Positions 6,731 to 61,100 of a stretch of DNA of 64,000 bases are shown piece by piece. The notes under the pieces are model-generated. The model saw nothing but the letters and a program-made list of their open reading frames with translations. It did not search any database and was not told the DNA's origin. Position numbers and translations under genes: made by a program. This DNA is from Oculina patagonica (Eukaryota), in NCBI RefSeq assembly GCF_052425735.1, contig NC_135763.1:25916001-25980000 (forward strand). The letters are read 5' to 3'. The number at the start of each line of letters is the position of its first letter. Within the stretch, counting starts at the first letter, position 1.

Positions 6731-6744
6731 CCTACCTTTATTCC

Positions 6745-7328
6745 ATATACTCGAAAGTTCAGTAAAGGAAAACGCCAAAACAGTAAATGAGATGGAGGCT
6801 GGAGTTACTGCTCTAAATGCCGATGTGGAAGAAATCAAAGCAAAAGCCGATAAAACCAGTTACGAGGTAATTACTCTGCGCCAGCAACAGTGGTATTTAG
6901 AAACATACCAAAGAAGGGAGAACCTTCGTTTTCATTGGATTCCTGAACGACTGGATGAGCAGGAAAACACCAGAGAAGTGCTGGTTAACTTTATGATAAA
7001 CGAGCTCAACCTCGAAGACGCGCCACAAATCGAATTTCAACGGGTACATCGAGTAGGCAGGTTTGACGCATCACAGCACAACCCACGCCAGATCATCGCT
7101 CGCTTTCTCCGCTATGGGGACCGGGAGAAAGTTTTTTCTCAGGCAAGACAACTTAAAGGCACAGGTATGGGAATATCTCCCGATCTCCCTAAAGGAGTCG
7201 TGGATATCAGAAAGAAGCAGATCGAAACCTTGAAAAAGGCTAAAAAAGAAGGCAAAAGAGCTTATTTCAGTAGAGCAGAGCCGGACAAACTGTACGTAGA
7301 TGGACATTTAATCCCTGTTTCAGAGTAA
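6745..7328 (+). CDS. L1/Tx1 ORF1 (coiled coil + RRM/CTD), 5'-truncated
   Basis: RRENLRF..IPE, IEFQRVHRVG, PRQIIARFLRYGDRE and DKLYVDG motifs typical of L1 ORF1. Confidence 0.85.
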
Positions 7329-18985: not shown

Positions 18986-21358
18986 TTTTTTTTTATTTAT
19001 TTATTTTTTTTTATTGCTTTACTGATTCATGCACACTACATTACAATACAATTACTGACAATTACTTACAAAGACGATTCTAACATTGCATACACTACAA
19101 ACACGAAAAAAAAACAATACTATTGTCGCTAACGTAAAGCGCTACTCCTATTTAACAAAAGTTTTGATTGATTGCTAAGCTACTTCTATTTGACACTAAT
19201 TATGCCCTATTTACAACAATGAAGATTAAGTAAAAGGACTTATTTAAAGATACAATAATTTCTCAAGAAAACTTAAGTATTTCCCATTTCTGTAGGTGAA
19301 ATTTAAGCCTGTCCCTTTTCTTAGCGATACAATATTCAATGTGTTCAATATATTTAAGTTTAGCTATTAACTGAGGTAGGAGTGGTTTTGTTTTCCTGAG
19401 CCGATTAGCGTGGACTACTTGCTTACCAGCAATGAGAATATGATTGAGAAGAGTCCAATGAGGACTTTCTTTTGTAATACCTAGCAGAATTTCGCTGTCA
19501 TTTAGCCTAGAAATGGTAATATTTAATTTATTTAACCAGTTAGTAGTATGCGTCCAGAAATCTATGGTAAATTTGCAGTGTAAAAACAAATGCTCGAGAG
19601 ATTCTTCGTACTCTCCACAAAACGTACATAACGAGGTATCTATTAGCCTCATTTTATTCAACAATTTGTTAGTATATATTATACGATTAAGAATTTTAAA
19701 TTGAAACATTCTTGTTTTAATGTCTAAAGTCACTTTTTGTGGCGTTAAATAAATTTGATTCCAGTCAAGATTTTGATCATCAAATAAAGAGTTGTATTTT
19801 AATCTTGCAGTAGGATGGACGTGTATGTTCCCTATCAGAATCCAGTACAGTCTTTTGCTCGTGAGTTCACTGAGCTTAATTTCTTCATTATTACAATTGA
19901 GCACAAACTGAGTTAAATCCAAAATTGTGGTGGTGCTCTGCTCTTGCGCATCAGGGGGTTGTGGATTTTTCGAGTTTATCAAGACTCTCCGTCTATTACG
20001 GCATTTTTTAATTCGAACTGTAGCTGTTCGTTAATGAGGACGAGCACTCCACTGCTATGATTCGAACCGTGACTATAGATCATTTCTCCACGCCATTGGA
20101 ATTTCCAATTACTAAGGATTTCTGGTGTACTATAGGTTTCTTGAAGAAACGTTATGTCACTTTTCTGTTTTTCTATCCACGTAAAAATTGATTTGCGTTT
20201 CTGGAGGTCTCGAATCCCTCGAGCATTGAGTGACATTATCTTAAAATTAACTTCTCCTATTGTGCGACTATGGTTTTGTCCTGAATAGGCTTAGCGAATG
20301 ATTATTTAATAGCGTAGCAAAACAAATGAAACTGAGAATTAAGCTGAGAATGTAGCAACATGCATAATTACAACACAAACACACAAAGAAGACTGAATTT
20401 ATCCTACTTACCGACTGCCCCAAAGCGAATTGTATGGGCGTTCCTACACCTACTGTGAATAACATTCCTGATGTTGTGTTGTGCTCCTTCTTTGTGATGT
20501 TAACTACGTATTAATTAAGTTTTTGTGATATAGAAAAATTTATGCGTTTAAAAGCGGGAAAAGGTGATTAGCATATAGTGTGCCAAGTTGTACAATAAAG
20601 AGCCGAAAACAGAAAGAAAAGCAAATAAATTATTACAATGGTGCATTACTCGGAATAAACTTTCCATTTACATAGAGTTTATCAGGGAATCTCTTGCTGA
20701 AATATACACTGCATCCTCTAGCCTTAGCATCCTTAAATTTCTTATTTTGGGATTTTCTTAGTTCGTACAATTCTTTTGGAATGTCCTCAAATACGTTGAA
20801 ATCTTTATCCTTTAATGTTTTTCTGGCTTGGCGGAGGACTAATTCGCGGTCAGAATAGCGCAAAAATCTTGCGATTACTGGACGAGGACCGTCGTCTTTA
20901 GGTTTTCCAACTCGATGAATTCTTTGAAATTCAATCTTGTCGCGTGGGTTGCTGATCTGAAGCTCGTCTTCCATGAACTTGTAAATAATCTCCTTTGTAT
21001 TCTCCACCTCGTGACGAGTGCCTTGTTCGTCTTGTTCCGTAGTATTATGTTCTTCGATTCCAATAAACATTAGGTTTTCTCTTCTACTGTAGTGTTCTTG
21101 GTAAAGAAGTTCTTTGCCTAAATCGTCCGCTTTCTTCTGCGCCGCTTTAACATCGCGTTTCAAATTGGCAATTTCTTCATCGTTAAAGTCAACACTTTCC
21201 TCAAGCTCCTTCACTGTCTTGTTGGTGTTTTTCATCTTCTCCTTCAGGTTATGAACCTCCTTGTCAAGATTGGCAACGGCATCCTCTATCTTAAATACAG
21301 CCTTGAACAGGTTATCGAGTCTGCTTTCAATATTATCTAGCTTTTGAAGCTTTGAAAG
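18986..21358 (-). mobile_element. Second L1/Tx1 element in antisense, 5'-truncated and internally deleted
   Basis: 9-bp TSD GCCATTCCT (18977-85, 21359-67) and a poly(T) at the left end. ORF1 at 20633-21358. The endonuclease start (19979-20236) is joined directly to the C-terminal zinc-knuckle region (19263-19982). Confidence 0.9.
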
Positions 21359-21367
21359 GCCATTCCT

Positions 21368-22654
21368 AAAATTCTTTATCGCCTCTCTCTTGTCTCAACA
21401 AATAAAACTTTTGTTAAAGAGGTCAATCAGGTGCTGTATAATTTTGTGTGGAAAGGCAAGGATAAAGTTAAACGGCTCGCTCTCATAAACAGTGTCGAGA
21501 ATGGTGGGTTAAATATGCCGCACATTGAGTCTCTCATTAACACGCAAAGGATAGTATGTATCAAAAAGTATTTGGGTGATTCACCCTGTTCCTGGAAAAT
21601 TATTCTCGACCACTATCTTCACAAAGTCGGGGGCAGTTTGCTTTTCCACTGCAACTTCGAGTACACTAAGCTCCCTTTGGACCTCCCTGATTACTGCAGA
21701 GAATGTCTTGCAACTTGGACAAAATTTACTGCCTCACCTGTCTCTTCAATGGATGAGATCGTTAACCAGATCTTATGGAACAACAAATTCATTTGTATCG
21801 GACAGAAATCAGTTTTTAACCGCAAACTCTTCTCCTTGGGGCTACATAAAGTTGGAGACCTTTTTAATGAGATAAACATTAAGCCACACACCACCTTGCA
21901 AAATCTAAATGCCCTGGATCTCTTATTTTTGAACGGTCTTTATGATTGCCTTCCACCTGAATGGAAGAAAGTGATGACCAACGACCCTCCATCGGTGCTC
22001 ATTAAAACTAACCATAAATGGGACGATGTGTTTTTGTACTCGGGCAATGATGCCCTTTTATTAAGTGAATTGTCCTCTAAAAAAATCTACAATATTTTGG
22101 TGTCAAAGATTTCGATTAGGCCGTCGGCAAAAAATAAATTCGATGTTTCATATGCTTCTGCAGAGCACGCCCTTGACTGGAAGAGAATCTACAGCAATGC
22201 TTTTAGATCCGCAATAGATACCGAAACGCGTGAATTTCAGTACAAGATACTTAATAGAATACTTCCTTTAAATGATTTCCTCTTCAAAATTGGCAAGTCT
22301 AACTCTCCTCTCTGCTCTTTCTGCCAATCCTCAGAGGAAAACATGTCCGACTTCTTTTTCCATTGTCCGTTGGTAGCAAACTTTTGGCAATCAATTAAGC
22401 ATCTATTGGGGGGTCATGAGCTAATTAAAAGAGAAGTGATCCTAGGGATCACCGACGCAGTTGAAAATGCATTTCTAAAGAATCATCTAATTCTATTAGG
22501 AAAACAACATATTTTCAGATGTAAACATAACAACTCTCTTCCTAGCGTAATCAGTTTCACAAAAACTTTGAAAGCAGTCTTTGATTCTGAACGTTTAATT
22601 GCTAAAGAAAATAACAAGATCAACTTTCATTATGACAAATGGAAGGATCTGTTA
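21368..22654 (+). pseudogene. Host L1 ORF2 part 4 (C-terminal region)
   Basis: AIP|KILYRL..FVWKGK..GGLN, FQYKILNRIL, CSFC..EENMSDFFFHC, KWK. Confidence 0.9.
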
Positions 22655-23988
22655 GGCTACCTCCTCTCATTGAGTCTAATGCTTGCGTGCGCTTTGCGCA
22701 TGCGCATTAGACTCTTTGTTATATGAAAAAAGCTGTTAGCAATCCCAAGGGAATGGTTCGGGATCGATAATCGTTCGCTGTAATGTAGAAAACAATGATC
22801 AGCTGCAAGAACGGACTCCGTACGGACACGCACGATTAGTTTCAATTAAAAACAGCCAATCAGCGACACGTGTTCCCACGCATAATTAAAAGTTCTTTCT
22901 CAAGTCACGATTATTCAACACTTGAACAGGACGAAATAATTTTCCAGTTAAGACATTTGTAAGCTTTTTGTGAAAATAAATCTTCGTTTTCAGTTCAGTT
23001 AAGCACTTGTGTTTCCGTCTTGCTTAAAAAGCAAGACGTCTTTGAGAAAAAATATTTCGACGGCGACTCGCGTTTATTTACACAATGCGACCAAATATTT
23101 ATTTTGTTTTAAAAAATAGAAAACTTTACCTCGGTTTTTGTATTTAAGTCATTCGAATTTTGACCAATTTTTTCTTTACAGTGCAAACAAAAACCTTCAA
23201 AAATAAAAGATGTACATGGATAAATGTAAATCAAGTTACGCGACTAAATCAAAATGCGTTTCAGTTTGGCCGCTTTGCAGTATTACACTGTCCCGGCCTT
23301 TGCCATACACTGAAGTCGAATTTCATGCTTTTACGACTCTCAGAGATCTTAAGTTCTTCTTACAGCTAGAAAAATCATAAAATGGTTACATTGATATGGA
23401 AGTGATGATTCGCGAAATTTGTACATCATGATAAACAGTCTTCGCTCCTGTGTATGGTAGCTCGATAATAATTGCCTAGTTTCCAGCGTTCAAAAGGTCA
23501 TCATTATATTGACGTGAGCATTTACACCCGTTTTTAGGAAAATCTGTCACTAAGTGCTTACAGTACAATGGAGTAACAGTCACTATTTCAAGTGCTTTTA
23601 TTGCAAAATCTGTTTCAAGAGTCATCATCAAAATGGTGAAAAATCTGAACGAAAACGATGTGAAGTTCTTCAACCTTTGTTGTAATGAACATGCTTTTTG
23701 TAAATCGTCACGCAATCTTGTCCAAATGTTTAATCGTTTCTGCTTTTACGGACAATACGGAAGAAGTAACATCAACTCCTGTTCATACTTTAAATTTTGT
23801 GAAGCATATAACATTTATGACTGTTTCGTTTTCATCCATAATCATCCACGATGCCCCTAGCTTGCTATAAGCATTTTAAATTAAACTCCCGAACACAAAC
23901 CTCTAACCAATTTTAACCGGCTTACGAAAACCGCGCAATCTGTATCACTATGCCATACGGCATTAGACTCATGTCACCCTTGGTGACC
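22655..23988. mobile_element. Non-autonomous DNA element with imperfect TIRs and TA TSD
   Basis: Ends GG..tgagtctaatgc and gcattagactca..CC. Removal with one TA restores the L1 end KWKDLLFF-stop. Confidence 0.6.
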
Positions 23989-24745: not shown

Positions 24746-25088
24746 GATATAAGGTACATACGTCAAAGCATATTGTTTGCCATGGCTTACAAAAACTTCA
24801 AAAAAATAAAAAAAAAACACACAACAACGGCAACAGCAACAACAAAACAATGATCACTAGATAGTACGATCTTTTTTATATATGGTGAGCAAAGTAAATT
24901 GTTAAAGAAAGTCAAATAAAGTGTCAGGCAAAAAGAGACCATATTTTACCCTTGTTATTTTATTTAATCACAACTTCTGCTTTAAGACAAAAACGTAAGA
25001 GCAAAAATGAAATGCATATTAAGTACTGCTTAGATACGCATTACTAGCAGAGTTCTTTTCAAGAAATAGCACACGTATAGAGACTTAC

Positions 25089-26114
25089 CTTATTGTTGAC
25101 CCGATTTCCAAAAATGAAAATAACAACCAACAAAGTAGATATACAAAAGCTCCAGTAGACATAACACAAAACCACGATGGTGTCTGCTTCATTTGACCTC
25201 TTGATGAGCTGATAAAAGTTGACGCACATTAGTGGTATGTCCAACGAAATAATCACAAATAGGAGAAGCGAAAATACAGCATTGGCCAGCTCTACAATCT
25301 CGCATAGCTTCAGGTGTTCCTGCCGCAAGTAGGCGATGGTAAAAGGGTAGATTGATTCATTGGATATTTTATTTTGCAGAGTGGCAAACATCTTTTCCAG
25401 GAGCATGCAAGTGACGCAGAAGATCAGAGGTGGTAAAGTCCAAGCAAAGGAATCGAGGACTCCAAACGCTATTTCAGTCACTCGAACCGTTACGTACATG
25501 CCTTGGGTTTGATTCCATGGTGGAAAAATAGAGATAACGCCGTTGAAACGAACACTAAGAAGGATGATAACGATGGAATTGATCACTGCTGCTAAGCAAG
25601 CTACAGCCAAACCTTTCACTGCTTTCTTCCTCATCCCGTCAAGCTCGGGTGCTTTCGTTGCAAAGCTGGAAAGAAATTGGGCAAATCTCGATCGCCTTTC
25701 GTTCATGAGTGGCAAAACAAACAAGCAAACGGTTGTGCTACTTGCATTCTGAACATACCAAGCGGTGTTAACCAATAAGAAAGAAAAAGAACTCATGGAC
25801 GAGAAACCTATGTAAAGGTGACTTGTGACACCTATTACCACCATTAGCCATTGGCCCACAACGACAAGCGCGCTGAAGAAGCGCGAAACGTACATTGTCC
25901 TCCGACCACTGCAATCACCCAGTGCGGTTTCGCCGAAATATTGCCCCGTCAACTTCATAGCGAACAAAATCGGACGGAAGATCTCTGCAAGCTGCCTTAG
26001 ACGCTTTGATCTCATTTCCACTTCTCTCGTATATTCTTCGTTGTGAGCAGTATTTTCAGTCTCATTTGCATCTCTTTTTCTCATTTCCAGCACATGTATC
26101 GTTCGAGGAATCAT
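25089..26114 (-). CDS. Gustatory receptor-like gene B, large first exon
   Basis: 342 codons, clear paralogue of 2087-3106. Phase-0 donor AAG|GTAAGT at 25083-88. Confidence 0.85.
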
Positions 26115-27690: not shown

Positions 27691-28734
27691 TCAGGTGGAC
27701 GTATCGGCTTTTTTGTGTTTGATGTTTTGTCCTTGCTCCTGTTGAACGTCCCAAGCGTTCACTGAGGAACAGCTACAACAAGGCCACATCCTGTAATATT
27801 CCAACCTGAATGTCCTGTTGAGCACTCCGTATATGACTGGGTTGATTGCAGAACTGATTGACACCAAGAAGACATTAAGAAGATACACTCTTCTGGGTAA
27901 AGAGTAGTTTCCTGTGGCGGCGTCTGTGAACTCGATGACAAACACAGGGACCCAGCAAAGCGTAAAACCCAACACCATGGCGAATAGAGTCTTGGTGATG
28001 TTTACTTCTTCAACACTCAACCTTGAACTATGAGCACTTATCGAGTCGATTGATGAAAACCGTTGTCGATGCTTCTTCACTTTCAGAAACACTTTCGTGT
28101 AGCAAAATGTTATGACAGCAAATGGAATTACGACTATTACCAACCCCAACAGGCCAGTGTATACCTTGTCGGTGGTCTGATGATGGAATTCTAGGACGCA
28201 CGTGATCTTCCCAGGATGGAACTGGAAATAAGCCCAACCTGTCACCAGTGGTAAGCCGAGGAAGAAGGCAGCGGAGAAAACAACAGCCAACAGCGAGAAC
28301 ACGACGAACTTCCTTGTGAAGATTTTGCGGAATAGCCAAGGTTTAACCACGCGGCAATATCGGTTGAAAGCCAGTAAAGCGATCGTTTGCAAAGAAACAA
28401 AGGCCAAAAAGAGAACTGCAAAGCCATGAACTCCACACACTCTCTCTGAATATCTCCATTGGCCCACGAGCAGTACGCCCCAAACCAGCGGCATGCAAAA
28501 TGTTGCCATAGCGACGTCAGAAATGGCCAGTGCAAGAATGTATTGAAAGGTGACGCCTTGAAAACGTGGATTCTTGTAAAAAATCAAGCAGACAAGGATA
28601 TTACCAAGCAGGGCCATTAAATTGATTAAAATGAAGAGCGTCGTCTCTATAATGTAGTCAGCGGTACTCCTGGAAGACATTATCGCTACTAGATGATCAT
28701 AGGGACTTTCTTCAAAGGTGCTATTTGACGCCAT
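27691..28734 (-). CDS. Class A GPCR, melatonin-receptor-like cnidarian type
   Basis: 347 aa with seven TMs. GN, LAISD, NRY (in place of DRY), CWVP and NPVIY motifs. Intronless CDS. Confidence 0.92.
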   Translation of the reverse strand: MASNSTFEESPYDHLVAIMSSRSTADYIIETTLFILINLMALLGNILVCLIFYKNPRFQGVTFQYILALAISDVAMATFCMPLVWGVLLVGQWRYSERVCGVHGFAVLFLAFVSLQTIALLAFNRYCRVVKPWLFRKIFTRKFVVFSLLAVVFSAAFFLGLPLVTGWAYFQFHPGKITCVLEFHHQTTDKVYTGLLGLVIVVIPFAVITFCYTKVFLKVKKHRQRFSSIDSISAHSSRLSVEEVNITKTLFAMVLGFTLCWVPVFVIEFTDAATGNYSLPRRVYLLNVFLVSISSAINPVIYGVLNRTFRLEYYRMWPCCSCSSVNAWDVQQEQGQNIKHKKADTST

Positions 28735-34210: not shown

Positions 34211-35259
34211 CTACATTTCGTCTTGAATGTTTTCCAACACCCTCGACATGTTGAGCAGTGTTCCTTTTATGTCTTGCATACCGGTCAACAACTCACTTTT
34301 CTCGGTGTCGTAGTATCGGTCAAGGACATTCAAAGACCAAGGAATATTTTCCTTTCGCAACTCACTTGCAAAAAACCGAGCGAAGTTGATCACCTCCGTT
34401 TCGTTCAGTCCACCGTTCTTGTTGTCTGTCGGCTCCATGCTCCAAGGTAAGTCAGGATATTGCTGCTCTTGGTAAAGTCGGTTGCGTGTTTGATCGCTTC
34501 CCTGACATTGCTCCGACCGTTTTCGTGATCAGAAGTACCGTCTCCGCTCCAGTACTTCTGTCCTCCAATCTTCTTGTTTGGTCCTGAGGCATAAATGTGC
34601 CACTCAGCCATCATAAATGAATCGTTTCGATAGATGTCTTGATCGATTTCGTCGAGATCATTTGCTGTTTTTCCCGGTGATCCAAGAATGAGGATGCGAT
34701 TTGCGTTTTTCCCACCCGTAGCGCAAATCGCGGCAACCACCTCGGATGTCCAAAGATTGTATTTATCTGGCCTCATACGAAGACTTTCTCCTCCGCACTC
34801 ATCTAGCGCAAGCTCAGTAAACAGGTTGAAGCTCAGTCTGTAGTCTTTGTCCTTCAGTTGCGTTGCCACGGCTTTCCACCAATATATGTAATTTCGTCGG
34901 TCTTCATCAGTCGCGTATGCTTCAGCGTGATGGTGGATCCAAGAAATTATCGGCGTGACTCCAACTTCAAGACATTTATCGACTACGGTCGTCAAACTGG
35001 TGAGAAACTGGTGAATTGAGAGTTGTTGTATGGGGCCGAATACAGATCTGCCCTCGACCGGAGCCTCACGTTTCGAAAGCTGTTGGAGAAGATGTCTATG
35101 TTCTTGCCATTGTATTTTGACATACAACGGGTCCGCTGTCTTGAACCAGTTTGTTGAAAAACCATGTACGATCACCTCTCGATAATCTGCTGGGCTTATT
35201 GGCAGGGATGCATTTATGGCAGAAATAAAGCTAAAGACTGCAAGGAATGGGAGAATCAT
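34211..35259 (-). pseudogene. GH5-fold glycoside hydrolase-like gene, copy 1 (diverged, frameshifted)
   Basis: Paralogue of copies 2-4. Compensating frameshifts at ~35000-35120 and a frameshift near 34435. Confidence 0.85.
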
Positions 35260-38963: not shown

Positions 38964-40033
38964 CTACATTGTGTCTTGAATGTTCTCCAACACCCTCGAC
39001 ATGTTGAGCAATGTTCCTTTAATGTCTTGCATAACGGTCAACCACTCGCTATTCCCGGTGTCGTAGTATCGGTCAAGGACATTCAGAGACCAAGGAATAT
39101 TTTTCTTTCGCAACTGACTTGCAAAAAATCGAGCGAAGTTGATCACCTCTCTTTCTTCCAGTGCACCACACGGTCGTTGTCTGCCGGCATCCATGCTCCT
39201 TGATAGGTGAGGAAATTTCTCTTTTTGGTAAAATCAGTTGCCTGTTTGATCGCTTTCCTGACATTATCACGACCATTCTTGTCATCGGGAGTACCGTCCC
39301 CCTTCCAGTACTTCTGTCCTCCTTTGTCCTTGTTTGGTCCCGATGCGTAAAGATGCCACTCAGCCATCAAGTACGGATCATTCTGATAGATCTTCTGGTC
39401 AATCTTGTCGAGGTCCTCTGCCGTTTTTCCTGGTGAACCTAAAATGAGAATACGTTTTGCATTGTTCCCGCCCGTTGCACGGATTGCTGCAACCACATCA
39501 GATGTCCAACGATTGTATTTGTCTGGCCTCATACGAAGACTTTCTTCACAAATTGTCTTCTGCCCTCCGCACCCGTATTTCCCTAGCTCAGTAAACAGAT
39601 TAAAGCTAAGTCTGAAGTCCCTGTTCTTCAGTTGCTTTGCCACGGTTGTCCACCAAGTGACGTAATTTTGTCGGTCTTCTTCAGTTGAGTATGCCTCAGC
39701 TTGGTGGTGGATCCAAGAAATTATTGGCGTTACGCCAACTTCGAGACATTTGTCGACTACCTTCGTCAAACTGGCGAGAAACTCGGTGAAGCCAGTGGTG
39801 TTGTATGGAGCTGAAAACAGATCCGCCCTGCACCGGAGCCTCACGTTTCGAAAGTTCTTCGAGAAGATGTCTTCGATATTCTTGTCATTGTATTTTGCCA
39901 ACGGGTCCGCTGTCTTGAACCAGTTTGTTGAAAAACCCTGACCGATCACGTCTTGGTAATCTGCTGGACTTATTGGCACGGATGCACTTGCCGCTGTAAT
40001 AGCGACGAGGACTGCAAAATATAAGACGATCAT
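38964..40033 (-). pseudogene. GH5-like gene copy 2 (single +2 frameshift near 39170)
   Basis: gcaccacacggtcg versus gcaccaccgtcg in copies 3 and 4; otherwise near-identical. Could be a sequencing error. Confidence 0.8.
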
Positions 40034-44609: not shown

Positions 44610-45677
44610 CTACATTGTGTCTTGAATGTTCTCCAACACCCTCGACATGTTGAGCAATGTTCCTTTAATGTCTTGCATAACGGTCAACCACTCGCTATTC
44701 CCGGTGTCGTAGTATCGGTCAAGGACATTCAGAGACCAAGGAATATTTTTCTTTCGCAACTGACTTGCAAAAAATCGAGCGAAGTTGATCACCTCTCTTT
44801 CTTCCAGTGCACCACCGTCGTTGTCTGCCGGCATCCATGCTCCTTGATAGGTGAGGAGATTTCTCTTTTTGGTAAAATCAGTTGCCTGTTTGATCGCTTT
44901 CCTGACATTATCACGACCATTCTTGTCATCGGGAGTACCGTCCCCCTTCCAGTACTTCTGTCCTCCTTTGTCCTTGTTTGGTCCCGACGCGTAAAGATGC
45001 CACTCAGCCATCAAGAACGGATCATTCTGATAGATCTTCTGGTCAATCTTGTCGAGGTCCTCTGCCGTTTTTCCTGGTGAACCTAAAATGAGAATACGTT
45101 TTGCATTGTTCCCGCCCGTTGCACGGATTGCTGCAACCACATCAGATGTCCAACGATTGTATTTGTCTGGCCTCATACGAAGACTTCCTTCACAAATTGT
45201 CTTCTGCCCTCCGCACCCGTATTTCCCTAGCTCAGTAAACAGATTAAAGCTAAGTCTGTAGTCCCTGTTCTTCAGTTGCTTTGCCACGGTTGTCCACCAA
45301 GTGACGTAATTTTTTCGGTCTTCTTCAGTTGAGTATGCCTCAGCTTGGTGGTGGATCCAAGAAATTATTGGCGTTACGCCAACTTCGAGACATTTGTCGA
45401 CTACCTTCGACAAACTGGCGAGAAACTCGGTGAAGCCAGTGGTGTTGTATGGAGCTGAAAACAGATCCGCCCTGCACCGGAGCCTCACGTTTCGAAAGTT
45501 CTTCGAGAAGATGTCTTCGATATTCTTGTCATTGTATTTTGCCAACGGGTACGCTGTCTTGAACCAGTTTGTTGAAAAACCCTGACCGATCACGTCTTGG
45601 TAATCTGCTGGACTTATTGGCAAGGATGCACTTGCTGCTGTAATAACGACGAGGACTGCAAAATATAAGACGATCAT
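44610..45677 (-). CDS. Secreted GH5-fold (cellulase-family) protein, copy 3, intact, 355 aa
   Basis: Signal peptide, then NVRL, IISWIHH, FNLFTE, AIRATGGNN..RIL, WHLY and GAWMP. Intronless. Confidence 0.9.
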   Translation of the reverse strand: MIVLYFAVLVVITAASASLPISPADYQDVIGQGFSTNWFKTAYPLAKYNDKNIEDIFSKNFRNVRLRCRADLFSAPYNTTGFTEFLASLSKVVDKCLEVGVTPIISWIHHQAEAYSTEEDRKNYVTWWTTVAKQLKNRDYRLSFNLFTELGKYGCGGQKTICEGSLRMRPDKYNRWTSDVVAAIRATGGNNAKRILILGSPGKTAEDLDKIDQKIYQNDPFLMAEWHLYASGPNKDKGGQKYWKGDGTPDDKNGRDNVRKAIKQATDFTKKRNLLTYQGAWMPADNDGGALEEREVINFARFFASQLRKKNIPWSLNVLDRYYDTGNSEWLTVMQDIKGTLLNMSRVLENIQDTM

Positions 45678-48600
45678 TTTGCAAAGTGTAAGAGAAAGGA
45701 TTGCAGGGGCAGTATTTAACATAGCGCTGCGAACGAAAGGTCAACTTTGATTGGCTGGAAGAAGAATATACTTCAACAATCTAATTTCATGATCTTTCGG
45801 CTCATATCATCATCTTAAAAACCCGGTGCTATGACAATAATAGTGATAGCATACAAACTGGGGCAAATATTTGTACCTAAACTATCATGCGGTCGTCTAG
45901 TTGTCTTTGCAATGAGGGCAGATTTTTAATGTACTTTTCAAAAAACGGAAAGTTTAAATGAACTACGTTAAATCTCTTTGCAAACATTTCAAAATAAATC
46001 ACATAAGTTAGCATATAATGTGAAATTGTAAGTTGACGAGAATGCTTTTGGCTCATATAAACGGGGCGAATATCTGTATCTACAATATCTTGCGGCTGAT
46101 ACCGCCAAGATGTCTTGGCATTGAGTGCCAAGCATTTTTCAAATGGTCTACATCAACGGACTAAGCTAAAGCCCATGGTCAACAAAACAATCACTCCGGA
46201 TCCGAGCTTAGTTAATAGTTTAGCCCGATTTTTATTTGCATGTCTTTGTTTGAATAGCTAGATTTATCACTGTTCAGTTACACCTTTTCCACTTTTTATC
46301 GTTTTAAAGCAAGCCATTCTCGTCATCTTAAAGCTGCATGTATCCAATATAAATGCTGATTATATTTCGCGATCCGGAGAGATCAAAGCAGGGTCGTTGA
46401 CGTGAATTCGTATTAATTATTTATCGCTGATAATGTAACGACGACGAAAACGAAATCGAAAACGAGATCGAAAAGAGTTTGTAGCTTATACCCGATAAAA
46501 AATAACTACCGAAAAAATTTAATGACCTTGAAAGAAATACTTATAGTGCGTTAAAGGATCGGGCTTATTTTTGGATTTTAATTTGCATGCATTATAAAAA
46601 TGTTTGGTTTATATAAGAGGGATACCTCGTCTGCAATTTCTCATGTGTATACAAGACTATCAAATGGTATAACTCTCTGAACACAACGATATAACGCCCT
46701 ACAGCTAGTCATTAAATGAACTTTACATGTCTCTGAGCAAATTCCGATATGTTTAAATGCAAAGCAAGCACGTCAATAGGAGGCTTATATTCGAAGAAGT
46801 TATATTTTTCTTTAAGAGGTATTAGGTAACAAAGTCCTGCACGTGGCTGGTGTTTATATAATAAGCTCGAGAGTTGAAAGCGCCTATTAAAGCACACATT
46901 CATGCACTTGTTGTGCTAGCACGCTTGCCTAATTAAACTTACCCTGACCCGGACCGCATGGATGTAACAAGAGGCAAAAATAACAGCATAGTTGAAAGGA
47001 AGAAAACACCAAACAAGTCAAAGTTAGAGACAAGCTGTACAGCTGAATATAAAGTTATTTTTTTTTCTTTGACAGCAGTCGACATAGCGTGGGTACATTA
47101 AGGTATGGTAGCAAAAAGACAGAAGGATTGGTATATGTTCTAGAACGTTCTGGGAAAATAATTTTAAAACTTGAGATAAGCAAATACAGCTTTGCAACGT
47201 TCTTTGACAGGGAATGTTGTCCTTAAATTTTTATTTACCAGCCTCTTCATGTAGAGATCATATTTCGCACATCAAAGTAGTGATAGAAAATTGAAATAAC
47301 AAAATCCAATGGTCAAGAAAAATATTGAAGTAAATACTTGGGTCTCCACAGTATGCCTCGATATATATATATATATATTTTTTCAATTTATCAAAATAAG
47401 CCAATATACCGACTGAATAAGCAATCTAGACGCATACTGTTTAAACAGGACACGGAATATTTGTTTCGGCGACCGGCAAGTGTCTACATAATAACGTCAT
47501 CAACCAAAAATTCGTTATTCATATCAATAAAAATTTACTCAATTTCGTAAATTCTGTTAGAACTAATAAAAAAATATATGGCAGCTTTATCCGAGCTTTA
47601 ATCTACTTGGCAAGCACACTGTGAAGATACTTTTCCACGAGCAATCGCATTTCTATATTTTATTCCCCCGATCCAAATTGTAACAAAAAGTCTGCGTCCA
47701 CATTATGTTAGCTGAACTGAAAAAAGACATTGCGTGGCGAGATGTTGGTCCATTTTAAGTCCTGAATTTTCAATGCTGGTTGCCACTTGGTGATGTAAAC
47801 TCAGCCTGCGCTTACTTCTTATTTCTTTCAGCCCGTCGATAAAAAAGTCAACTACATCATCGACCTGCTGTTGCAATTTCACTGACCGATAAAATACAGA
47901 AAAAAAAGTAAACGTTGTATAGAAAATAATTGCAACATTTGATGTCGGCAAAACAGATCGTTGTTTTAGCACTAGACATTATTTTGCATCCATGATACGT
48001 GGCTACGCTATAAGGCCTTCTACTCAATGTATCAATTTGTAGACAATTTTGACTTATGATAAAGAGTCAAGAGGGTCCTGAAGGGGTAAAATGGGTCCGC
48101 ATGGAGTTGTTGCCGTCAACTCGTGGTCTCATCGCTGATTCTTTTCTTTCTTTTTTTGATATCATTTGCAAGTCGAGATAAATACAAAATCTTGGAAAAT
48201 AGCACTCATATAAGTACTATAAATTTCTAAAAAAAAAAAACGGTGAAAGAGCTGAGGCGTCCATGATAAGTGACAGCTCCCCACTATCCAAACGAAGATG
48301 GGCGAGGTACAACTCGACTAAACAAATAACTCTGGCACGATCTATTCGGATTCTTGAGGGTATCAAGTTTGGCCTTATTACTCTTTGTTATCCTCCATGA
48401 TAAAAATTCATAAAACAACACAGGTAAAATAAACATTCATTTTAAGTCTATTGCCTCAGCAGATCGAAAAATATAAATTGTTTATTGCGTTTAGATAAAG
48501 AGATTGTGAAGTTTTCATAAATGGTGACTTTTTCTTTCAAATAGGAAGATAAAAAATGACGAGTTTGGTCGATGTCTAGTGTAATGTGTTAGGTAGCTTT

Positions 48601-49666
48601 TAAAATTCTAGTCTTATATAAGTACACTGATGTTGTTGTTCAAGTGTCTGACATTTTACATTCAGAATTGGTAAAACAAAAGCGGCGTTGGATATTAAAA
48701 AAAATATATTTGAATGCTAATCCACTGTTGTCAGTAATGCCTCGCTTGTTGTATTTCGGAACAAGATAATTAACTAACAATATCGAATTCATTCAAATAT
48801 TCTTGCCATACTTTTGCTTCCTCGCTGACTGCTGAACTACGTACGTATAAAGTAGCACACAATGGTTGATTCAAGGTGTAAGGTTGTCTAAACACAAGCC
48901 ATTGATGTCTTGTATGACACGATTGTTTCATTCCAGTAATGGGTATTGGTAAGCAAAAAAGACACATTCATATTACACAGTGTGAAGAGAGTTGTATTGG
49001 CTGGAATAATTTGGTGTTGCGTCGCAAATTATATTTAAATAATCACGTTTATCCTATGCAGTACAGATGGAATAGCTCCCAAAAGCCTTGAGGCATAGAA
49101 GATTCAATTAAAGGGCCGACTGAAATCGCTCATGATCAGCTTTGAAAGAGGTGGAGCTTCCAACCCAAAAGGCTCTTCGAACAGAAATCTATAATATTGA
49201 GATCGGGATCGCGGTTCATCGATAAATCTCAAGAAGGCGGGGTTTGCTGCTGATAACATTTTTGTATGCTCTGTTCTGACAGCTGTGGTATGGCGGTTGC
49301 TTTTATAAAATCCGTAGAAACAGTGCAGATCCGAAAACAAACGAAGTAAAACATTTCAAAAGCAAACTTTAATGTTACCGCTTTACATTGAACTTTCTAA
49401 TCAAACTGAATGTCTTCCAGGAATAAGTCCTTATTTTAGTCAGGACGCTTCTTAGAGAAATAAAAAGCGTACATCAATGGTATTGCTTCAGTGATAGACT
49501 AATTAATACTCCCCTTTTAAGTCTAGTTGTACCTCTGTGAATCACATAAATCTTGAAATAACCCTGATTTTGATTAGCCTTCTGAATTCCTCTTTTTATC
49601 ATTACCCTGACGAATACACTATATGTTCATTATAGTTCCTTATGCTACATTCTATCGTTACATGAT

Positions 49667-50734
49667 CTACATTGTGTCTTGAATGTTCTCCAACACCCTC
49701 GACATGTTGAGCAATGTTCCTTTAATGTCTTGCATAACGGTCAACCACTCGCTATTCCCGGTGTCGTAGTATCGGTCAAGGACATTCAGAGACCAAGGAA
49801 TATTTTTCTTTCGCAACTGACTTGCAAAAAATCGAGCGAAGTTGATCACCTCTCTTTCTTCCAGTGCACCACCGTCGTTGTCTGCCGGCATCCATGCTCC
49901 TTGATAGGTGAGGAGATTTCTCTTTTTGGTAAAATCAGTTGCCTGTTTGATCGCTTTCCTGACATTATCACGACCATTCTTGTCATCGGGAGTACCGTCC
50001 CCCTTCCAGTACTTCTGTCCTCCTTTGTCCTTGTTTGGTCCCGACGCGTAAAGATGCCACTCAGCCATCAAGAACGGATCATTCTGATAGATCTTCTGGT
50101 CAATCTTGTCGAGGTCCTCTGCCGTTTTTCCTGGTGAACCTAAAATGAGAATACGTTTTGCATTGTTCCCGCCCGTTGCACGGATTGCTGCAACCACATC
50201 AGATGTCCAACGATTGTATTTGTCTGGCCTCATACGAAGACTTCCTTCACAAATTGTCTTCTGCCCTCCGCACCCGTATTTCCCTAGCTCAGTAAACAGA
50301 TTAAAGCTAAGTCTGTAGTCCCTGTTCTTCAGTTGCTTTGCCACGGTTGTCCACCAAGTGACGTAATTTTTTCGGTCTTCTTCAGTTGAGTATGCCTCAG
50401 CTTGGTGGTGGATCCAAGAAATTATTGGCGTTACGCCAACTTCGAGACATTTGTCGACTACCTTCGTCAAACTGGCGAGAAACTCGGTGAAGCCAGTGGT
50501 GTTGTATGGAGCTGAAAACAGATCCGCCCTGCACCGGAGCCTCACGTTTCGAAAGTTCTTCGAGAAGATGTCTTCGATATTCTTGTCATTGTATTTTGCC
50601 AACGGGTCCGCTGTCTTGAACCAGTTTGTTGAAAAACCCTGACCGATCACGTCTTGGTAATCTGCTGGACTTATTGGCACGGATGCACTTGCTGCTGTAA
50701 TAGCGACGAGGACTGCAAAATATAAGACGATCAT
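49667..50734 (-). CDS. Secreted GH5-fold (cellulase-family) protein, copy 4, intact, 355 aa
   Basis: Same motifs as copy 3; 4 aa differences. Confidence 0.9.
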   Translation of the reverse strand: MIVLYFAVLVAITAASASVPISPADYQDVIGQGFSTNWFKTADPLAKYNDKNIEDIFSKNFRNVRLRCRADLFSAPYNTTGFTEFLASLTKVVDKCLEVGVTPIISWIHHQAEAYSTEEDRKNYVTWWTTVAKQLKNRDYRLSFNLFTELGKYGCGGQKTICEGSLRMRPDKYNRWTSDVVAAIRATGGNNAKRILILGSPGKTAEDLDKIDQKIYQNDPFLMAEWHLYASGPNKDKGGQKYWKGDGTPDDKNGRDNVRKAIKQATDFTKKRNLLTYQGAWMPADNDGGALEEREVINFARFFASQLRKKNIPWSLNVLDRYYDTGNSEWLTVMQDIKGTLLNMSRVLENIQDTM

Positions 50735-52445
50735 TTTTGCAAAGTGTAAGAGAAAGGATTGCAGGGGCAGTATTTAACATAGCGCTGCGAACGAAAGGTC
50801 AACTTTGATTGGCTGGAAGAAGAATATACTTCAACAATCTAATTTCATGATCTTTCGGCTCATATCATCATCTTAAAAACCCGGTGCTATGACAATGATA
50901 GTGATAGCATACAAACTGGGGCAAATATTTGTACCTAAACTATCATGCGGTCGTCTAGTTGTCTTTGCACTGAGGGCAGATTTTTAATGTACTTTTCAAA
51001 AAACGGAAAGTTTAAATGAACTACGTTAAATCTCTTTGCAAAAATTTCAAAATAAATCACATAAGTTAGCATATAATGTGAAATTGTAAGTTGACGAGAA
51101 TGCTTTTGGCTCATATAAACGGGGCGAATATCTGTATCTACAATATCTTGCGGCTGATACCGCCAAGATGTCTTGGCATTGAGTGCCAAGCATTTTTCAA
51201 ATGATCTACATCAACGGACTAAGCTAAAGCCCATGGTCAACAAAACAATCACTCCGGATCCGAGCTTAGTTATTAGTTTAGCCCGATTTTTATTTGCATG
51301 TCTTTGTTTGAATAGCTAGATTTATCACTGCTCAGTTACACCTTTTCCACTTTTTATCGTTTTAAAGCAAGCCATTCTCGTCATCTTAAAGCTGTATCCA
51401 ATATAAATGCTGATTATATTTCGCGATCCGGAGAGATCAAAGCAGGGTCGTTGACGTGAATTCGTATTAATTGTTTATCGCTGATAATGTAACGACGACG
51501 AAAACGAAATCGAAAACGAGATCGAAAAGAGTTTGTAGCTTATACCCGATAAAAAATAACTACCGAAAAACTTTAATGACCATGAAAAAAATACTTATAG
51601 TGCGTTAAAGGATCGGGCTTATTTTTGGATTTTAATTTGCATGCATTATAAAAATGTTTGGTTTATATAAGAGGGATACCTCCTCTGCAATTTCTCATGT
51701 GTATACAAGACTATCAAATGGTATAACTCTCTGAACACAACGATATAACGCCCTACAGCTAGTCATTAAATGAACTTTACATGTCTCTGAGCAAATTCCG
51801 ATACGTTTAAATGCAAAGCAAGCACTTCAATAGGAGGCTTATATTCAAGAAGTTATATTTTTCTTTAAAAGGTATTAGGTAAAAAACTCCTGCACGTGGA
51901 TGGTGTATATATAATAAGCTCGAGAGTTGAAAGCGCCTATTTAAGCACACATTCATGCACTTGTTGTGCTAGCACGCTTACCGAATTAAACTTACCCTGA
52001 CCCGGACCGCATGGATGTAACAAGAGGCAAAAATAACAGCATAGTTGAAAGGAAGAGAACACCAAACAAGTCAAAGTTAGAGACAAGCTGTACAGCTGAA
52101 TTTAAAGTTATTTTTTCTTTGGCAGCTGTCGACATAACATGGGTACATTAAGGTATGATAGCAAAAAGGCAGAAGGATTGGTATATGTTCTAGAACGTTC
52201 TGGGAAAATAATTTGAAACTTGAGATAAGCAAATACAGCTTTGCAACGTTCTTTGACAGGGAATGTTGTCCTTAAATTTCATTTACCAGCCTCTTCATGT
52301 AGAGATTATATTTCGCACATCAAAGTAGTGATAGAAAAATGAAATAACAAAATCCAGTGGTCAAGAAAAATATTGAAGTAAATACTTGGGTCCCCACAGT
52401 ATGCCTCGATATATATATATATATATTTTTTTTTCAATTTATCAA

Positions 52446-53849
52446 TGACAATGATAAATAATGACAGCGTACAGGAAAAAACACAGCTGCGAAACAACAC
52501 TGCTTGCGCTGATAGAAGATTGGAAATTGGCCGCTGATACAAAGCAACTTGTTTATATTCTATTTACAGATATGAGCAAGGCCTTTGACAGCTTGAGCCA
52601 TTCCTTGACGATAAAGAAGCTGGAGGCTTACGGCTTTGGAAGACGTTCTCTTGAACTAATGCGATCATTTTTTGAGAACAGACATAACAGAGTAAAATTG
52701 GGCGAAATCACGAGTGACTGGATAAAGATGAAACGTGGATGCCCTCAAGGATCATCCTTCGGACCCCTACTTTGGAACATGTTTCAAAGTGATCTGTCAT
52801 CACATGTAAAGGACGCAAACTTAACTATGTACGCTGACGACCACCAAATGTACGTTAAGGGAACGGACCACGAAACAGTTGGACGCAGTTTGAAAATTCA
52901 TGGTAGCCAAGCCCTGGCTTGGTACTCAAAGAACTATTTAAAAGCAAATCCAGACAAGTTCCAGTCGCTAATTATCAATCCAAGAAAACTCGATAAGGAC
53001 AAGAGCGACACAGCCCTCAGCATCGATGACATAGACATTACAAAAACAGAACAAATCAAGCTACTGGGAGTTCACATCGACGATAATCTTGAGTTCACCG
53101 AGCATATCCGTGTGCTATGCATTAAGGCCAGCCAGAAAGTCGGAGTACTTTCTCGTCTTCGCAATTTAATACCTTGCAAGGCTAAGCTATTACTGTATAA
53201 GACGTTCATTTTACCTCACCTAACATACTGCCATCTAACATGGCAGTTTTGTAAGTCATCGGACAAAAGGAAACTTGAGAGAATTCAGGAACGCGCATTA
53301 AGAGTTATATTCAGATCCCACGCCGAAACCTATAACGAACTCTTGGGACGGGCAGATTTGCCCACACTATATAATAGGCGTTTACAAGATACAGCAACGC
53401 TTATGTATAAGGTCAAGAACGGGCTTGCGCCAGACAACGTCTCTGCCCTTTTTGTCCGCAAAGACACTACACACTCGCTTAGAAACAGTGATTTTGTCTT
53501 ACCGCGTTTTGATACTAAACGCTACGGGAAACATTGTATCAGATATCTTGGACCACTTCTATGGTCAAAATTAAGCAAAGAACTGAAAAACTCGCCGACT
53601 GTGGCTGCATTCAAAACTAAAATTAGAAAACTCAATCTATCGGACTACGTGGACAACAATAGTAACTGTTGCAAACTCTGTTGCGCTTAAGACATTGTAA
53701 ATATTAGTTTTTAGTTTTTAGTTAAGTGTTTTAAATATTTTTAGCTTAGCATTATTAATAGTATTTTGGGTATTTTAATTGTGTCCCCAATTAGTCCATA
53801 AGGGCTAAACACACAGACACGGTAATAAAGTTTTTATTATTATTATTAT
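52446..53849 (+). mobile_element. CR1/L2-group LINE, 5'-truncated, uninterrupted RT frame 52461-53690
   Basis: DMSKAFD, GCPQGS..GPLL, YADD, then AATAAA + (TTA)n tail. The empty site tttatcaa|aataagcc occurs in the other units. Confidence 0.92.
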
Positions 53850-58157: not shown

Positions 58158-61100
58158 ATGCCTTCTCGAGTTACACCTAACGGTGCCCCGGTACAAGGGG
58201 ACCAAGAGATATCAATCGCAGCACAACCTACGACGATCAATGTCTCGTTCGTTGTTAATATTCAAGAGAACGAAGATGTCAACGAACAGGGGCTTAAAGA
58301 AATTGATGAAGTATACAGTCCGGTGCTAAAGCTGATGAAGTTGTTCGGAATATATTATGGAGATACATCCTTAAGGCGACGTTTGACGTATACCACAGGC
58401 CGTTGCAAAAAACTGAGCGTTCTTCCTCGCATTTATTGCGGAGTGGTATTTTCTGGTTTCTGGCTAAACGTTATTATGTCTTCTTCCGGTATTTTCTTTG
58501 GAAATGATATCTATCTCTTTTTGATGTTCAGTTTCTATAATTTGTTTATTGCACTTAACGCAACGATGAGCTTGATTTTGTTGCAATTAAATGGTACGAA
58601 GAAATCCCGATTCGAAAAGTTCCTTGCTGGCGTATCGTCCGTCATTAAAAGCCAAAATTTAGAAAAGGTTAAAGCGAAGTCCAATAAAGGTTTAATCATG
58701 TTCTGTATATCCTTTTTATCCTTCGTAGCAGTCATCGTGGCCTCCGCAACACTGCTACACATAAACCTTGCAAACTTGAAACCTTGGAATCGGTGGTATG
58801 GGCTTAGAATAATTCCATGATCTTCAGTTTAATTGGAGTTGGTGTGTGGCTGCTGCCAATTTTATTTTTGTGCATTACATGCTCAATATTGGGAGAATTT
58901 TTTGAAGATTTACATAAAAGAATGTCACAATTTCATTCGAACCCAGTAGAGCTAGCGGCATTGAAACTGGAGTATCACCAACTGTGTGATGTAGTCGAGC
59001 TTGCTGACAAGATGCTTTGTCCTCTTCTTTTTGAAATGGTCTCGTTGTACATTCCACTTCTCTGCTTTAATCTTTACAATGTTGTGAACTTACCCGATGA
59101 AAACTCACTGTTGTTCTTACTGGGGAATCTAATCTGGCTTCTGATTGCAGCTAGTATCTTAGCAGTCATCTTGTCGTTTGGATCCAAAGTCAGCGAAAAG
59201 GTATGAAATGAATTTCTTTTTCTTCTTGTTTTTCTTGAACTCGTTTGGTGATATGCCAAAAAAATCCGTGTAGAATAATACAATTTAGGCTTTGTCAAAT
59301 ATGTTTGATGATGTTGTTGTTGCTGTGGTCTTGGTCATTTTTAACTCGGAAAAGAGTTGTAGTGGGCGAAGTGAATTCACTCCTTCACTCCTTCACTCCA
59401 TCACTCCTTCACTCGTTTCCTGTTAGACATATGCACGCAATGCGTGCAAGTGTTTTAAGGCCTCTAGAGAATGAGACCTTTTCTCTGATACCTACATTTC
59501 TTGTTAAATTACATAAAATTGACATGCCTAGTCACCAACCGAAATATTGTATTAATGTCAGTTTTCTTGAAATAATATTATGATATTTATTCAGCTATAA
59601 GCCGAGACCGTAAACCTTTGGTTTTTTAGAACCAGTTAGAAAAAAACTAACCCAAAACACTCAGGTAAAGATGAATTTATTTCAGTACGATTTGATGAAA
59701 AAAAATCGCTCGACTTATAGCCAATGATATTATTATTATTATTATTTTTCGTTACCTTCAAATAACAAAAAGGAAAAATAAAAAGAAAGAAATCAATTTG
59801 CAACAGATGGGAACTCTATCTCTTGGCCTTTCGGTCTGCTCTCGATCAGTATTTGATGACAATCAAAGTGAAGTAAACAGAAGTTTGGAAAGTATAACAT
59901 CATTTGTATTAGCAAACCTTTATTTGTTAGTTTGTTGTTTTCGATTCTTGTTTCATAATAACTTTTCCGAGTTTAGTGGCTTATAGCCACTTTTAGTTAT
60001 TTTTATAGGTGATACAAATGCTAATTTCCTAATTTGTTAAAACCACATGTTCTGATCAAGTATTTATCTCGAATCTTTAACTTCTATTTCAGACTAACAG
60101 CTTTCAAAAGATTTTGCAAACATATCCTGTTTCGACAGCGGACGAAGTGAAGGTAACTTTTATAAGCATAGCAACGACTTTCCCAACCAAATCCCAACAA
60201 GTAAAAAAAGAAAGGCCGCCCACTCTGTCTTTATTTTTTCCCAAAACGTGGTCGAAATTGGTAACTCATCATAAGATTACCAGGATTACAATTTTTTTTT
60301 GGACAGAAAGCATGGAACTGCATTTTTATTGCCTTCATCAAAGAAGAAAATTACTGTAAATTCCATGTAGCGAGAAAGCTGCTAATGTTTTATTTTAATT
60401 TTCTTTCAGTTAGTGATGTTTCTGCTGGATCTTCAAGGTAACCCAAAGGGTCTTTCTATTGGAGGTCTGGTCGTCATTACTAAATCCTTGTCTCTAACGG
60501 TAATGCCCTTGATTTTTTTTTACTCATATATGAAATGTCAGTAAATATTTATTATGGTGATTGCCACCCTCTTATTTGTTTCTTTTAAACTACTTTATCA
60601 CCTTCACAGCATGTACAACATAAGGCTCCTTACATTATGTAAGCAAATCCTGTCTCTTGTATTTTATCCCAGCTACTACAGTAACGTTTACGAATACCTT
60701 TAGTATAAATTCCTACAAAAAATGTATATTTTCGGACATACTACATATCCTTCAGGTTTCATTGTGGTTGCTTAAATATTCTGGAAGTTACCGGGGGGGG
60801 GGGGGATTACTCCCCGCTGGTCTGAAAAGATCCAAAATAAGCCCGGTCTGAATAAGGTTAATTTCAAAGGCAACACTGTGAGAGGTTAAATGTACCCTAG
60901 TTTTGGCCTCGTAAGGTAAATAACTTTAGAATATAACTATGTCTTACAGTACCATAATTACTGCATGAGCATCAAAATATACGACAAACTGTCATCATCA
61001 TCTTTGTGTTCGATATTTCAACTTCACCTGGAATTGTAAAGTAAATCCATTAGAAAAACGAAAGTACGTTTACAATTCATGCAGAGCTTCTTCCCTCCAT

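Follow-up and report, generated by a model that had tools for sequence, protein, structure and literature searches.

What can a glycoside hydrolase (GH) fold do once its catalytic nucleophile has gone? The question is raised by the window analysed here, a stretch of 64,000 nucleotides of the Oculina patagonica contig NC_135763.1 (positions 25,916,001 to 25,980,000), in which the open reading frame (ORF) list and tblastn revealed four tandem copies of one intronless gene on the minus strand, spaced at 4.8-5.6 kb. The encoded proteins resemble family GH5 and carry Ala at the position of the nucleophile Glu on strand β-7. In clan GH-A, the largest clan of glycosidases, the rule that catalysis needs two glutamates is, to our knowledge, taken to hold without exception. 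Two of the copies are intact, and these are listed here with the sites that are discussed below.

49667-50734, minus strand: copy 4, intact single-exon coding sequence (CDS) of 355 aa, GH5-like (ORF; PF00150, 63.7 bits; AlphaFold2 model; transcript contigs).
44610-45677, minus strand: copy 3, intact CDS of 355 aa, 99 % identical to copy 4.
50681-50734, minus strand: putative signal peptide MIVLYFAVLVAITAASAS, a hydrophobic core followed by a small-residue A-S-A-S motif, read from the sequence.
50534-50542, minus strand: Arg65-Leu-Arg67 on β-2, the canonical GH5 Arg and a second, family-specific Arg.
50288-50293, minus strand: Thr148-Glu149, the acid/base Glu kept, with Thr before it instead of the canonical Asn.
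50060-50062, minus strand: codon of Glu225 (in AEWH), a family-specific buried carboxylate on β-6, two residues before His227.
49895-49897 (copy 4) and 44838-44840 (copy 3), minus strand: Ala280, codon GCA, at the GH5 nucleophile position (alignments to mutant pairs).
49784-49786, minus strand: codon of Asn317, profile-aligned to β-8 Trp286 of TmCel5A.

Both intact proteins matched Pfam PF00150 (62.7 and 63.7 bits, against a curated cut-off of 23.5), and the GH5 motifs named in the original prediction (NVRLR, ISWIHH, FNLFTE, AIRATGGNN and WHLY) were all present. The AlphaFold2 model of copy 4, built on 26 homologues, showed the eight-strand alternating strand-helix pattern of a (β/α)8 barrel with a mean predicted local distance difference test (pLDDT) score of 88.4, falling below 50 for residues 1-15; all 50 matches listed by Foldseek against the PDB were GH5 structures of subfamilies 4 and 25. 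Beyond the signal-peptide-like N terminus no hydrophobic segment was apparent, and the protein has four cysteines (read from the sequence). Direct translation gave YQGAWMP at 49886-49906 in copy 4 and at 44829-44849 in copy 3, with the Ala codons exactly where they had been predicted. It also gave FNLFTEL at 50285-50305, in which FNLFTE aligns to the (M/L)NE acid/base motif of GH5 and does read TE rather than NE.

At the level of sequence-to-structure alignment, the placement of Ala280 in the nucleophile column is unusually secure, because the best PDB matches are pairs of structures that differ only by a Glu-to-Ala mutation. The GAW of the query aligned to GEW/GAW of the crystal pair 9bjx/9bmk, which differ only by the engineered nucleophile, and the family profile aligned it to GEF/GAF of CtCel5E (4u3a/4u5i), so that Ala280 corresponds to Glu314 of CtCel5E; the same column holds Glu253 of TmCel5A (3amc; pair 3amc/3azr). 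Engineered GH5 mutants of the glycosynthase type (4u5i E314A, 9bmk and 5d9m E280A) have the same replacement at the same position, and they were the top database matches because they carry Ala. These were made in the laboratory for crystallography or for synthesis from activated donors, whereas the Ala of the coral family is natural, ancient and selected, and is accompanied by other fixed changes. The pairing of Asn317 with Trp286 was obtained in two profile alignments, but the single-sequence alignment to 9bmk was shifted by two residues, so this pairing is less certain.

The closest characterized enzymes were GH5_25 and GH5_4 endoglucanases, mannanases and xyloglucanases (TmCel5A 3amc, CtCel5E 4u3a, FnCel5A 3nco and CelE 4im4; profile E value 3e-37; Foldseek E value ~1e-15, TM ~0.7; identity only 15-20 %), which have the same (β/α)8 fold and strand order. 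The β-2 Arg (Arg65), the β-4 acid/base Glu and the β-6 His and Tyr (His227 and Tyr229) are common to both groups, as is the β-3 His pair (His110) in the animal branch of the coral family, although that pair is lost in its Clostridia branch (YQAD). In contrast, the coral family has T/I-E in place of N-E, G-A-W-M in place of G-E-F/W, R-x-R in place of R-I-P, Glu225 in place of Ser/Thr and, by the profile alignments, Asn317 in place of Trp286. Pfam, the model and the alignments bear out the predicted GH5 fold and the missing β-7 nucleophile, and the N terminus is like a signal peptide. As the fold and the sequence model are those of GH5 and the β-7 nucleophile Glu is lacking, 'GH5-derived' is a more accurate label than 'GH5 cellulase'.

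The coral protein belongs to a large family that is distinct within GH5. A word-indexed search returned 184 relatives, the named ones being from stony corals, sea anemones, an octocoral and three Mytilus species. When 1.84 billion cluster representatives were searched exhaustively with phmmer, only 360 matched, which sets the family apart from the numerous canonical GH5 sequences. NCBIfam had no match for the coral protein or for five bacterial members, the ESM Atlas gave generic 'cellulase' clusters only, and NCBI names proteins of the family 'cellulase/esterase CelE-like'. About 200 full-length members, down to 28 % identity, were aligned to the family hidden Markov model. Position 280 was Ala in 191 of these (96 %), Glu in seven and Ser in one; GAW is therefore a fixed family trait and not a lesion, as had been argued from the coral copies. 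Around it, Gly279 (93 %), Trp281 (99 %) and Met282 (97 %) were conserved, as were the acid/base Glu149 (99 %, 198/200), His227 (100 %, 200/200), Tyr229 (94 %), the canonical Arg65 (99 %), the family-specific Arg67 (98 %), Asn317 (99 %) and Glu225 (97 %, with Gln in four members). The residue before the acid/base was Thr in animals and in the Bacteroidota-type clade, or Ile/Val/Leu in the Clostridia-type clade, and the canonical Asn of the NE motif was found in one member only (P0159). At the same columns, four canonical GH5 enzymes of Lachnoclostridium phytofermentans, used as the outgroup, have R-I-P, N-E, Ser/Thr-x-H and G-E; on this alignment, R-x-R, T/I-E, E-W-H, G-A-W-M and Asn317 are consequently shared derived characters of the family.

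The seven homologues with Glu280 (AEW or GEW; P0047, P0077, P0114, P0115, P0123, P0125 and P0220) were scattered over the tree. Met282 was replaced by Gln in two of them, and Gly279 by Ala in four. P0077 represents 279 sequences, and the single contig examined for it is a Tara metagenome scaffold (L101:2276-3256, listed with the Glu280 set). As revertants that arose in nature, these proteins could serve as controls for canonical retaining activity.

A FastTree phylogeny of 165 rows was rooted on the outgroups; being a quick tree, its deep branch order is to be treated cautiously. The family was monophyletic (support 97) and divided into two clades. Clade I (at least 166 genome matches) was made up mostly of Clostridia, with some Bacteroidota, Anaerolineae and Brevibacillus, and multidomain Bacteroidota proteins with type IX secretion system (T9SS) tails stood at the base of Clade II. 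The animal sequences formed a nested group of 79 rows (support 97), or 80 with the sister sequence P0121 (support 100). Ala280 occurred on every basal branch of the family, and parsimony with a Glu outgroup needed seven changes, namely one loss at the family root and six regains at the tips; at least four of the regained Glu280 sequences were sister to an Ala-bearing sequence with support of at least 96. Loss of the nucleophile thus appears to be bacterial and ancient and not a coral invention, because the animal clade nests among bacterial proteins. The original prediction had treated it as a coral feature, which is not supported, as Ala280, the loss of Asn, Arg67, Glu225 and Asn317 are common to hundreds of bacterial proteins.

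P0121 (L100:7039-9960) is a protein of 973 aa with GH5-like, Big_9, cadherin-like and DUF4114 domains, and the first of these shares 59 % identity with the coral protein and is the sister of the entire animal clade. P0121 is encoded on a gene-dense, 13-kb metagenome contig beside genes of bacterial-type Pfam families (PatA_N, DUF4058, Peptidase_S13 and GT2). The contig looks bacterial, and possibly cyanobacterial (a guess from PatA_N and DUF4058), which makes this lineage a candidate donor of a transfer into animals.

Is a protein of this kind still an enzyme? Of the eight active-site residues that are canonical in GH5, two or three are missing, and many bacterial members look like adhesins, with Big_9, cadherin-like, FG-GAP, TSP3 and InlB B-repeat modules or a T9SS tail. 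These features would suit a dead enzyme that only binds glycans, which bacteria would use as a lectin or adhesin tip and corals and mussels as a secreted protein for recognition. There are precedents for non-catalytic GH5 modules: subfamily GH5_30, which is without the catalytic machinery, and the cellulose sensor Rsi24C-GH5, which lost its acid/base, share the GH5 fold and an incomplete catalytic pair with the coral family (PMC3526467). The coral family, however, keeps its acid/base Glu almost without exception. In a binder, Gln or Asp would be expected to be tolerated at Glu149 and His227, yet both are retained in bacteria and animals alike at 25-30 % identity, and the constraint on the remaining catalytic residues, Arg65 included, is not relaxed. 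Such nearly complete retention of the acid/base and of the remaining active-site residues is an enzyme-like pattern and not one of decay. The changes also form a fixed, concerted set instead of scattered losses, and at position 280 Glu was regained about six times and almost nothing else is tolerated. A binding domain, moreover, would normally have no need of further carbohydrate-binding modules (CBMs), and with their CBMs and secretion tags the bacterial members are like the usual catalytic domains. Of the two readings offered in the original prediction, an altered and possibly substrate-assisted enzyme or a non-catalytic binder, the conservation pattern favours the enzyme; the binder we regard as rather improbable. 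Because the −1 subsite has been remodelled in a concerted, fixed way with enzyme-like conservation of the remainder, the family is, judged from its sequences, probably an active carbohydrate enzyme with non-canonical chemistry.

What that chemistry might be is suggested by the positions that changed. The −1 sugar subsite of an old, mostly bacterial GH5 offshoot would have been rebuilt by the joint replacement of three canonical residues: the Asn before the acid/base by Thr or Ile/Val/Leu, the β-7 nucleophile Glu by Ala after Gly and, probably, the β-8 Trp by Asn. These are residues that, in canonical GH5 enzymes, touch the −1 sugar on its C2 side, and throughout clan GH-A the NE-motif Asn binds the 2-OH of the sugar. 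Its loss in every member except P0159 therefore points to a different C2 substituent on the substrate. Arg67, Glu225 and Met282 would be the new invariant residues, with Glu149, Arg65, His227 and Tyr229 kept. The mechanism that we tentatively favour, as one that is possible rather than probable, is substrate-assisted catalysis on a 2-acetamido sugar, in which Glu149 would act as the general acid/base and the 2-acetamido group of the substrate itself as the nucleophile (neighbouring-group participation, as in GH18, GH20, GH84 and GH85). The cavity at Gly279-Ala280 and the replacement of Asn by Thr/Ile148 would make space for the N-acetyl group, Tyr229 could hydrogen-bond the acetamido carbonyl and Glu225 could polarise its NH. 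In the coral, the proteins may then act as a secreted, expressed multi-copy family on chitin-, peptidoglycan- or other N-acetylhexosamine (HexNAc)-containing glycans, in digestion or antimicrobial defence.

The likeness to GH18, GH20, GH84 and GH85 is one of logic only, as these families belong to a different clan and have no detectable sequence relationship to the coral family. They combine a TIM barrel, a single acid/base carboxylate, no enzyme nucleophile and a Tyr that bonds the acetamido oxygen, with an Asp/Asn polariser next to the acid/base or two residues before it (D-E, D-x-E or N-x-E); in GH85 the equivalent residue is Asn. In the coral family, no carboxylate other than Glu149 occupies a canonical catalytic position.

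Which carboxylate, if any, has taken over from the β-7 Glu had been considered in the original prediction, which named the Asp of PADND and the Glu of AEWH. The former (Asp285) was rejected, as the position varies, with Asn in most bacteria and Ala in Mytilus. Tyr229 is also an unlikely replacement nucleophile, being Phe or Trp in ~5 % of members. The Glu of AEWH, Glu225, fared better as a family-specific and conserved residue, but some proteins combine Gln225 with Ala280. Were Glu225 a relocated second carboxylate, it could serve as general base for a water molecule in the Gly-Ala cavity, which would turn a retaining enzyme into an inverting one, or it could itself be the nucleophile, now displaced, and the substrate need not be N-acetylated. 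The canonical outgroups have Ser/Thr at this position, and the residue lies on the strand beside Ala280, one barrel layer lower, from where its side chain, going by the model, could reach the cavity. In the sole bacterial lineage with Glu225 replaced by Gln, one of two sisters (P0220) has regained Glu280, and the retained Arg65 would otherwise be without a partner. The equivalent Arg pairs with the nucleophile in canonical GH5 enzymes. A switch of mechanism within a single GH family is known from GH97 (PMC2670981). Gln is, however, the only recurrent substitute at position 225, and in the four cases the other motifs are mostly intact: P0165 and P0261 keep all of them together with Ala280, and P0265 is also changed at Trp281 and Asn317. 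That Gln is tolerated fits a polarising or hydrogen-bonding role better than that of an essential nucleophile. Compensation between the two positions is not consistent, as Glu225 is kept in six Glu280 variants of the animal type, and a relocated carboxylate leaves the family-wide loss of the NE-motif Asn and the β-8 change from Trp to Asn unexplained. We consider this alternative, the main rival of substrate assistance, unlikely, though it deserves a hearing.

The substrate was also approached from the domain architecture and gene neighbourhoods of the bacterial relatives. A domain scan covered 30 multidomain members, in which a recurrent Bacteroidota architecture joined the GH5-like domain to FN3, InlB B-repeat and CBM96 modules and a T9SS tail; others had FN3 alone, CBM4_9 with FG-GAP repeats, Big_9/cadherin-like/He_PIG repeats, or Ig-like and TSP3 modules. 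Neighbour clustering of about 80 Clostridia loci gave a two-component system and ABC transporters as the only recurrent partners; the system, of OmpR type, adjoins the gene in about 20 of the 80, and these are not sugar-utilisation clusters. Non-Clostridia loci and T9SS members had unrelated neighbours and no polysaccharide-utilisation cluster. With neighbours so unrevealing, the substrate is not inferable from genomic context. In one gut Clostridia species (L001:11447-13285), a gene for a GH5-like domain with FN3 is followed directly by one for a GH25 muramidase with FN3 domains, which is the only hint in the neighbourhoods towards cell-wall substrates.

Several of these observations weigh against substrate-assisted catalysis on HexNAc glycans. 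The GH25 neighbourhood is confined to one species group, and none of the 30 multidomain members has a chitin- or peptidoglycan-binding module (LysM, SH3 or CBM5/12), the appended modules being CBM96, CBM4_9, FN3 and Ig/cadherin-like repeats; a cellulose-binding module was not seen in them either. The phage families of PHROGs contained no member, apart from a match of the FN3-type tail, so that a link to endolysins was not supported. At the active site, the Asp/Asn polariser that stands beside the acid/base in GH20 and GH18 is lacking; position −1 is Thr/Ile, the residue found in the coral family at the polariser position of GH18, GH20, GH84 and GH85, and position −2 is Phe/Leu. Glu225 is a candidate substitute, on barrel-layer geometry derived from the strand assignment, and Arg65 and Arg67 would together place positive charge beside an oxazolinium intermediate that is itself cationic.

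The two arginines could instead bind a carboxylate of the substrate, which would then be an anionic polysaccharide such as a uronic-acid polymer (e.g. alginate) or a glycosaminoglycan, cleaved by elimination or in some other way that does not call for a nucleophile on the enzyme. Compared with canonical GH5, the site has lost one carboxylate and gained one Arg (R-x-R against R-I-P), and among the modules of the recurrent Bacteroidota architecture is CBM96, a family founded on a member that is specific for alginate (PMC9971899). The Pfam CBM96 model, however, may include modules of other specificities, no alginate or uronate utilisation genes were present at the bacterial loci inspected, and a Glu kept at the acid/base position is atypical of lyases. 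We know of no polysaccharide lyase with a GH5 or TIM-barrel fold that would serve as a precedent. Both the anionic substrate and the elimination route are accordingly judged improbable.

Rather more credence, still short of an even chance, is given to the broader proposal that this is the first clan GH-A lineage in which the β-7 Glu nucleophile has been abandoned for a substrate-assisted mechanism or an inverting one (with Glu225), that it arose in bacteria, and that it may have reached anthozoans and mussels by gene transfer and multiplied there, so that several expressed genes now encode secreted proteins that serve digestion or antimicrobial defence.

Among open-access papers and preprints, no GH5 group with a natural Ala at the nucleophile was found described, although an earlier description elsewhere is possible, and no characterization of the cnidarian or mussel genes was found. 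The 2012 classification of GH5 does not cover the family (PMC3526467), and an animal survey, in the part of it used here, treats GH5 genes as cellulases without discussing catalytic residues (PMC6011409). Genome annotation and CAZyme censuses likewise name these proteins cellulases on the two-glutamate basis. The label is probably wrong for the coral, sea-anemone and mussel genes whichever reading holds. By its sequences, the family appears to be an uncharacterized GH5 branch with a rebuilt active site and not a broken gene. It occurs in hundreds of bacterial lineages and in at least two animal phyla, and a selected Ala with fixed compensating changes is indicative of an unrecognized activity. 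If catalytic, it would be a natural case of a retaining glycosidase scaffold that changed its mechanism, and its members would form a new class of enzymes acting on marine glycans; if non-catalytic, it would be a large, conserved family of glycan receptors.

In the coral itself, the genes are maintained and expressed. The whole genome contained 16 matches to the GH5-like protein, of which seven were full length without stops, each in a single piece. These seven intact paralogues keep all the motifs, and their pairwise ratios of non-synonymous to synonymous substitution rates (dN/dS) of 0.09-0.30 show purifying selection. Transcript contigs from four small runs of four different studies covered 49350/49422 to 50718/50737, that is, the ORF of copy 4 and about 300 nt downstream without intergenic DNA, with one exception; contig depth figures are unusable for ranking expression.

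49350-49666, minus strand: 3′ untranslated region of copy 4 (contigs of four runs end at 49350-49458).

One contig carried 20 non-templated T's abutting 49350, where the genome has no T run, which places the poly(A) site near that position; an ATTAAA signal lies at 49368-49373 (TTTAAT on the plus strand) and, read along the minus strand, precedes the site by 18 nt. Another contig carried the SMART template-switch oligo sequence. The contig ends, the non-templated T's, the template-switch sequence and ATTAAA combined show that the copy 4 gene yields an unspliced, polyadenylated mRNA. The exception was a lower-depth contig of run X4 (50602-51749), which continues past the start codon into over 1 kb of upstream sequence and has one base missing at 50734; its source may be a longer 5′ leader, transcription that reads through from the adjacent copy or DNA in the library.

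Two trivial explanations of the locus were rejected. Pseudogenes and bacterial contamination are both at odds with the intact ORFs, dN/dS of at most 0.30, a poly(A) tail with its ATTAAA signal, a chromosome-scale contig of 38.5 Mb with animal genes and retroelements around the array, and the 16 genome matches. The secreted, tandemly amplified and transcribed coral copies are candidates for host-microbe or feeding functions.

Copies 3 and 4 (compared over 44613-45677 and 49670-50734) differ by four amino acids and no synonymous change (dN 0.005, dS 0), and they may stem from a very recent duplication or from gene conversion, the numbers being small. Translation from an earlier in-frame ATG, at 45722, would lengthen copy 3 by 15 aa (ORF 44610-45722, 370 aa). 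The remaining two copies are frameshifted.

38967-40033, minus strand: copy 2, 98-100 % identical, with a frameshift from a 2-bp insertion directly after PADND (tblastn frames, DNA alignment).
34214-35259, minus strand: copy 1, diverged, 64-82 % identical, with several frame changes (tblastn, DNA alignment).

Copy 2 is likely a recent pseudogene or an assembly error. The frame changes of copy 1 include a 1-bp deletion immediately after GAW; although frameshifted, it reads LGAW, as the original prediction had noted of this copy.

Around the array, ORFs at 1937-3106 (minus strand), 25059-26114 (minus strand) and 58158-58820 (plus strand) encode related proteins with several hydrophobic stretches; they share a LAEIFRPIL..MKL.GQYFGETAL segment and form an unannotated paralogous family that flanks the GH5-like genes. 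A further ORF with several hydrophobic stretches (27691-28734, minus strand) is like a G-protein-coupled receptor in appearance, judged by eye. Retrotransposon-like ORFs (reverse-transcriptase-like or ORF1-like, also by eye) were seen at 52461-53690, 21431-22726 and 6690-7328 on the plus strand and at 20633-21235 on the minus strand. Their interspersion in the array fits an animal chromosomal setting, and they may have aided the tandem amplification.

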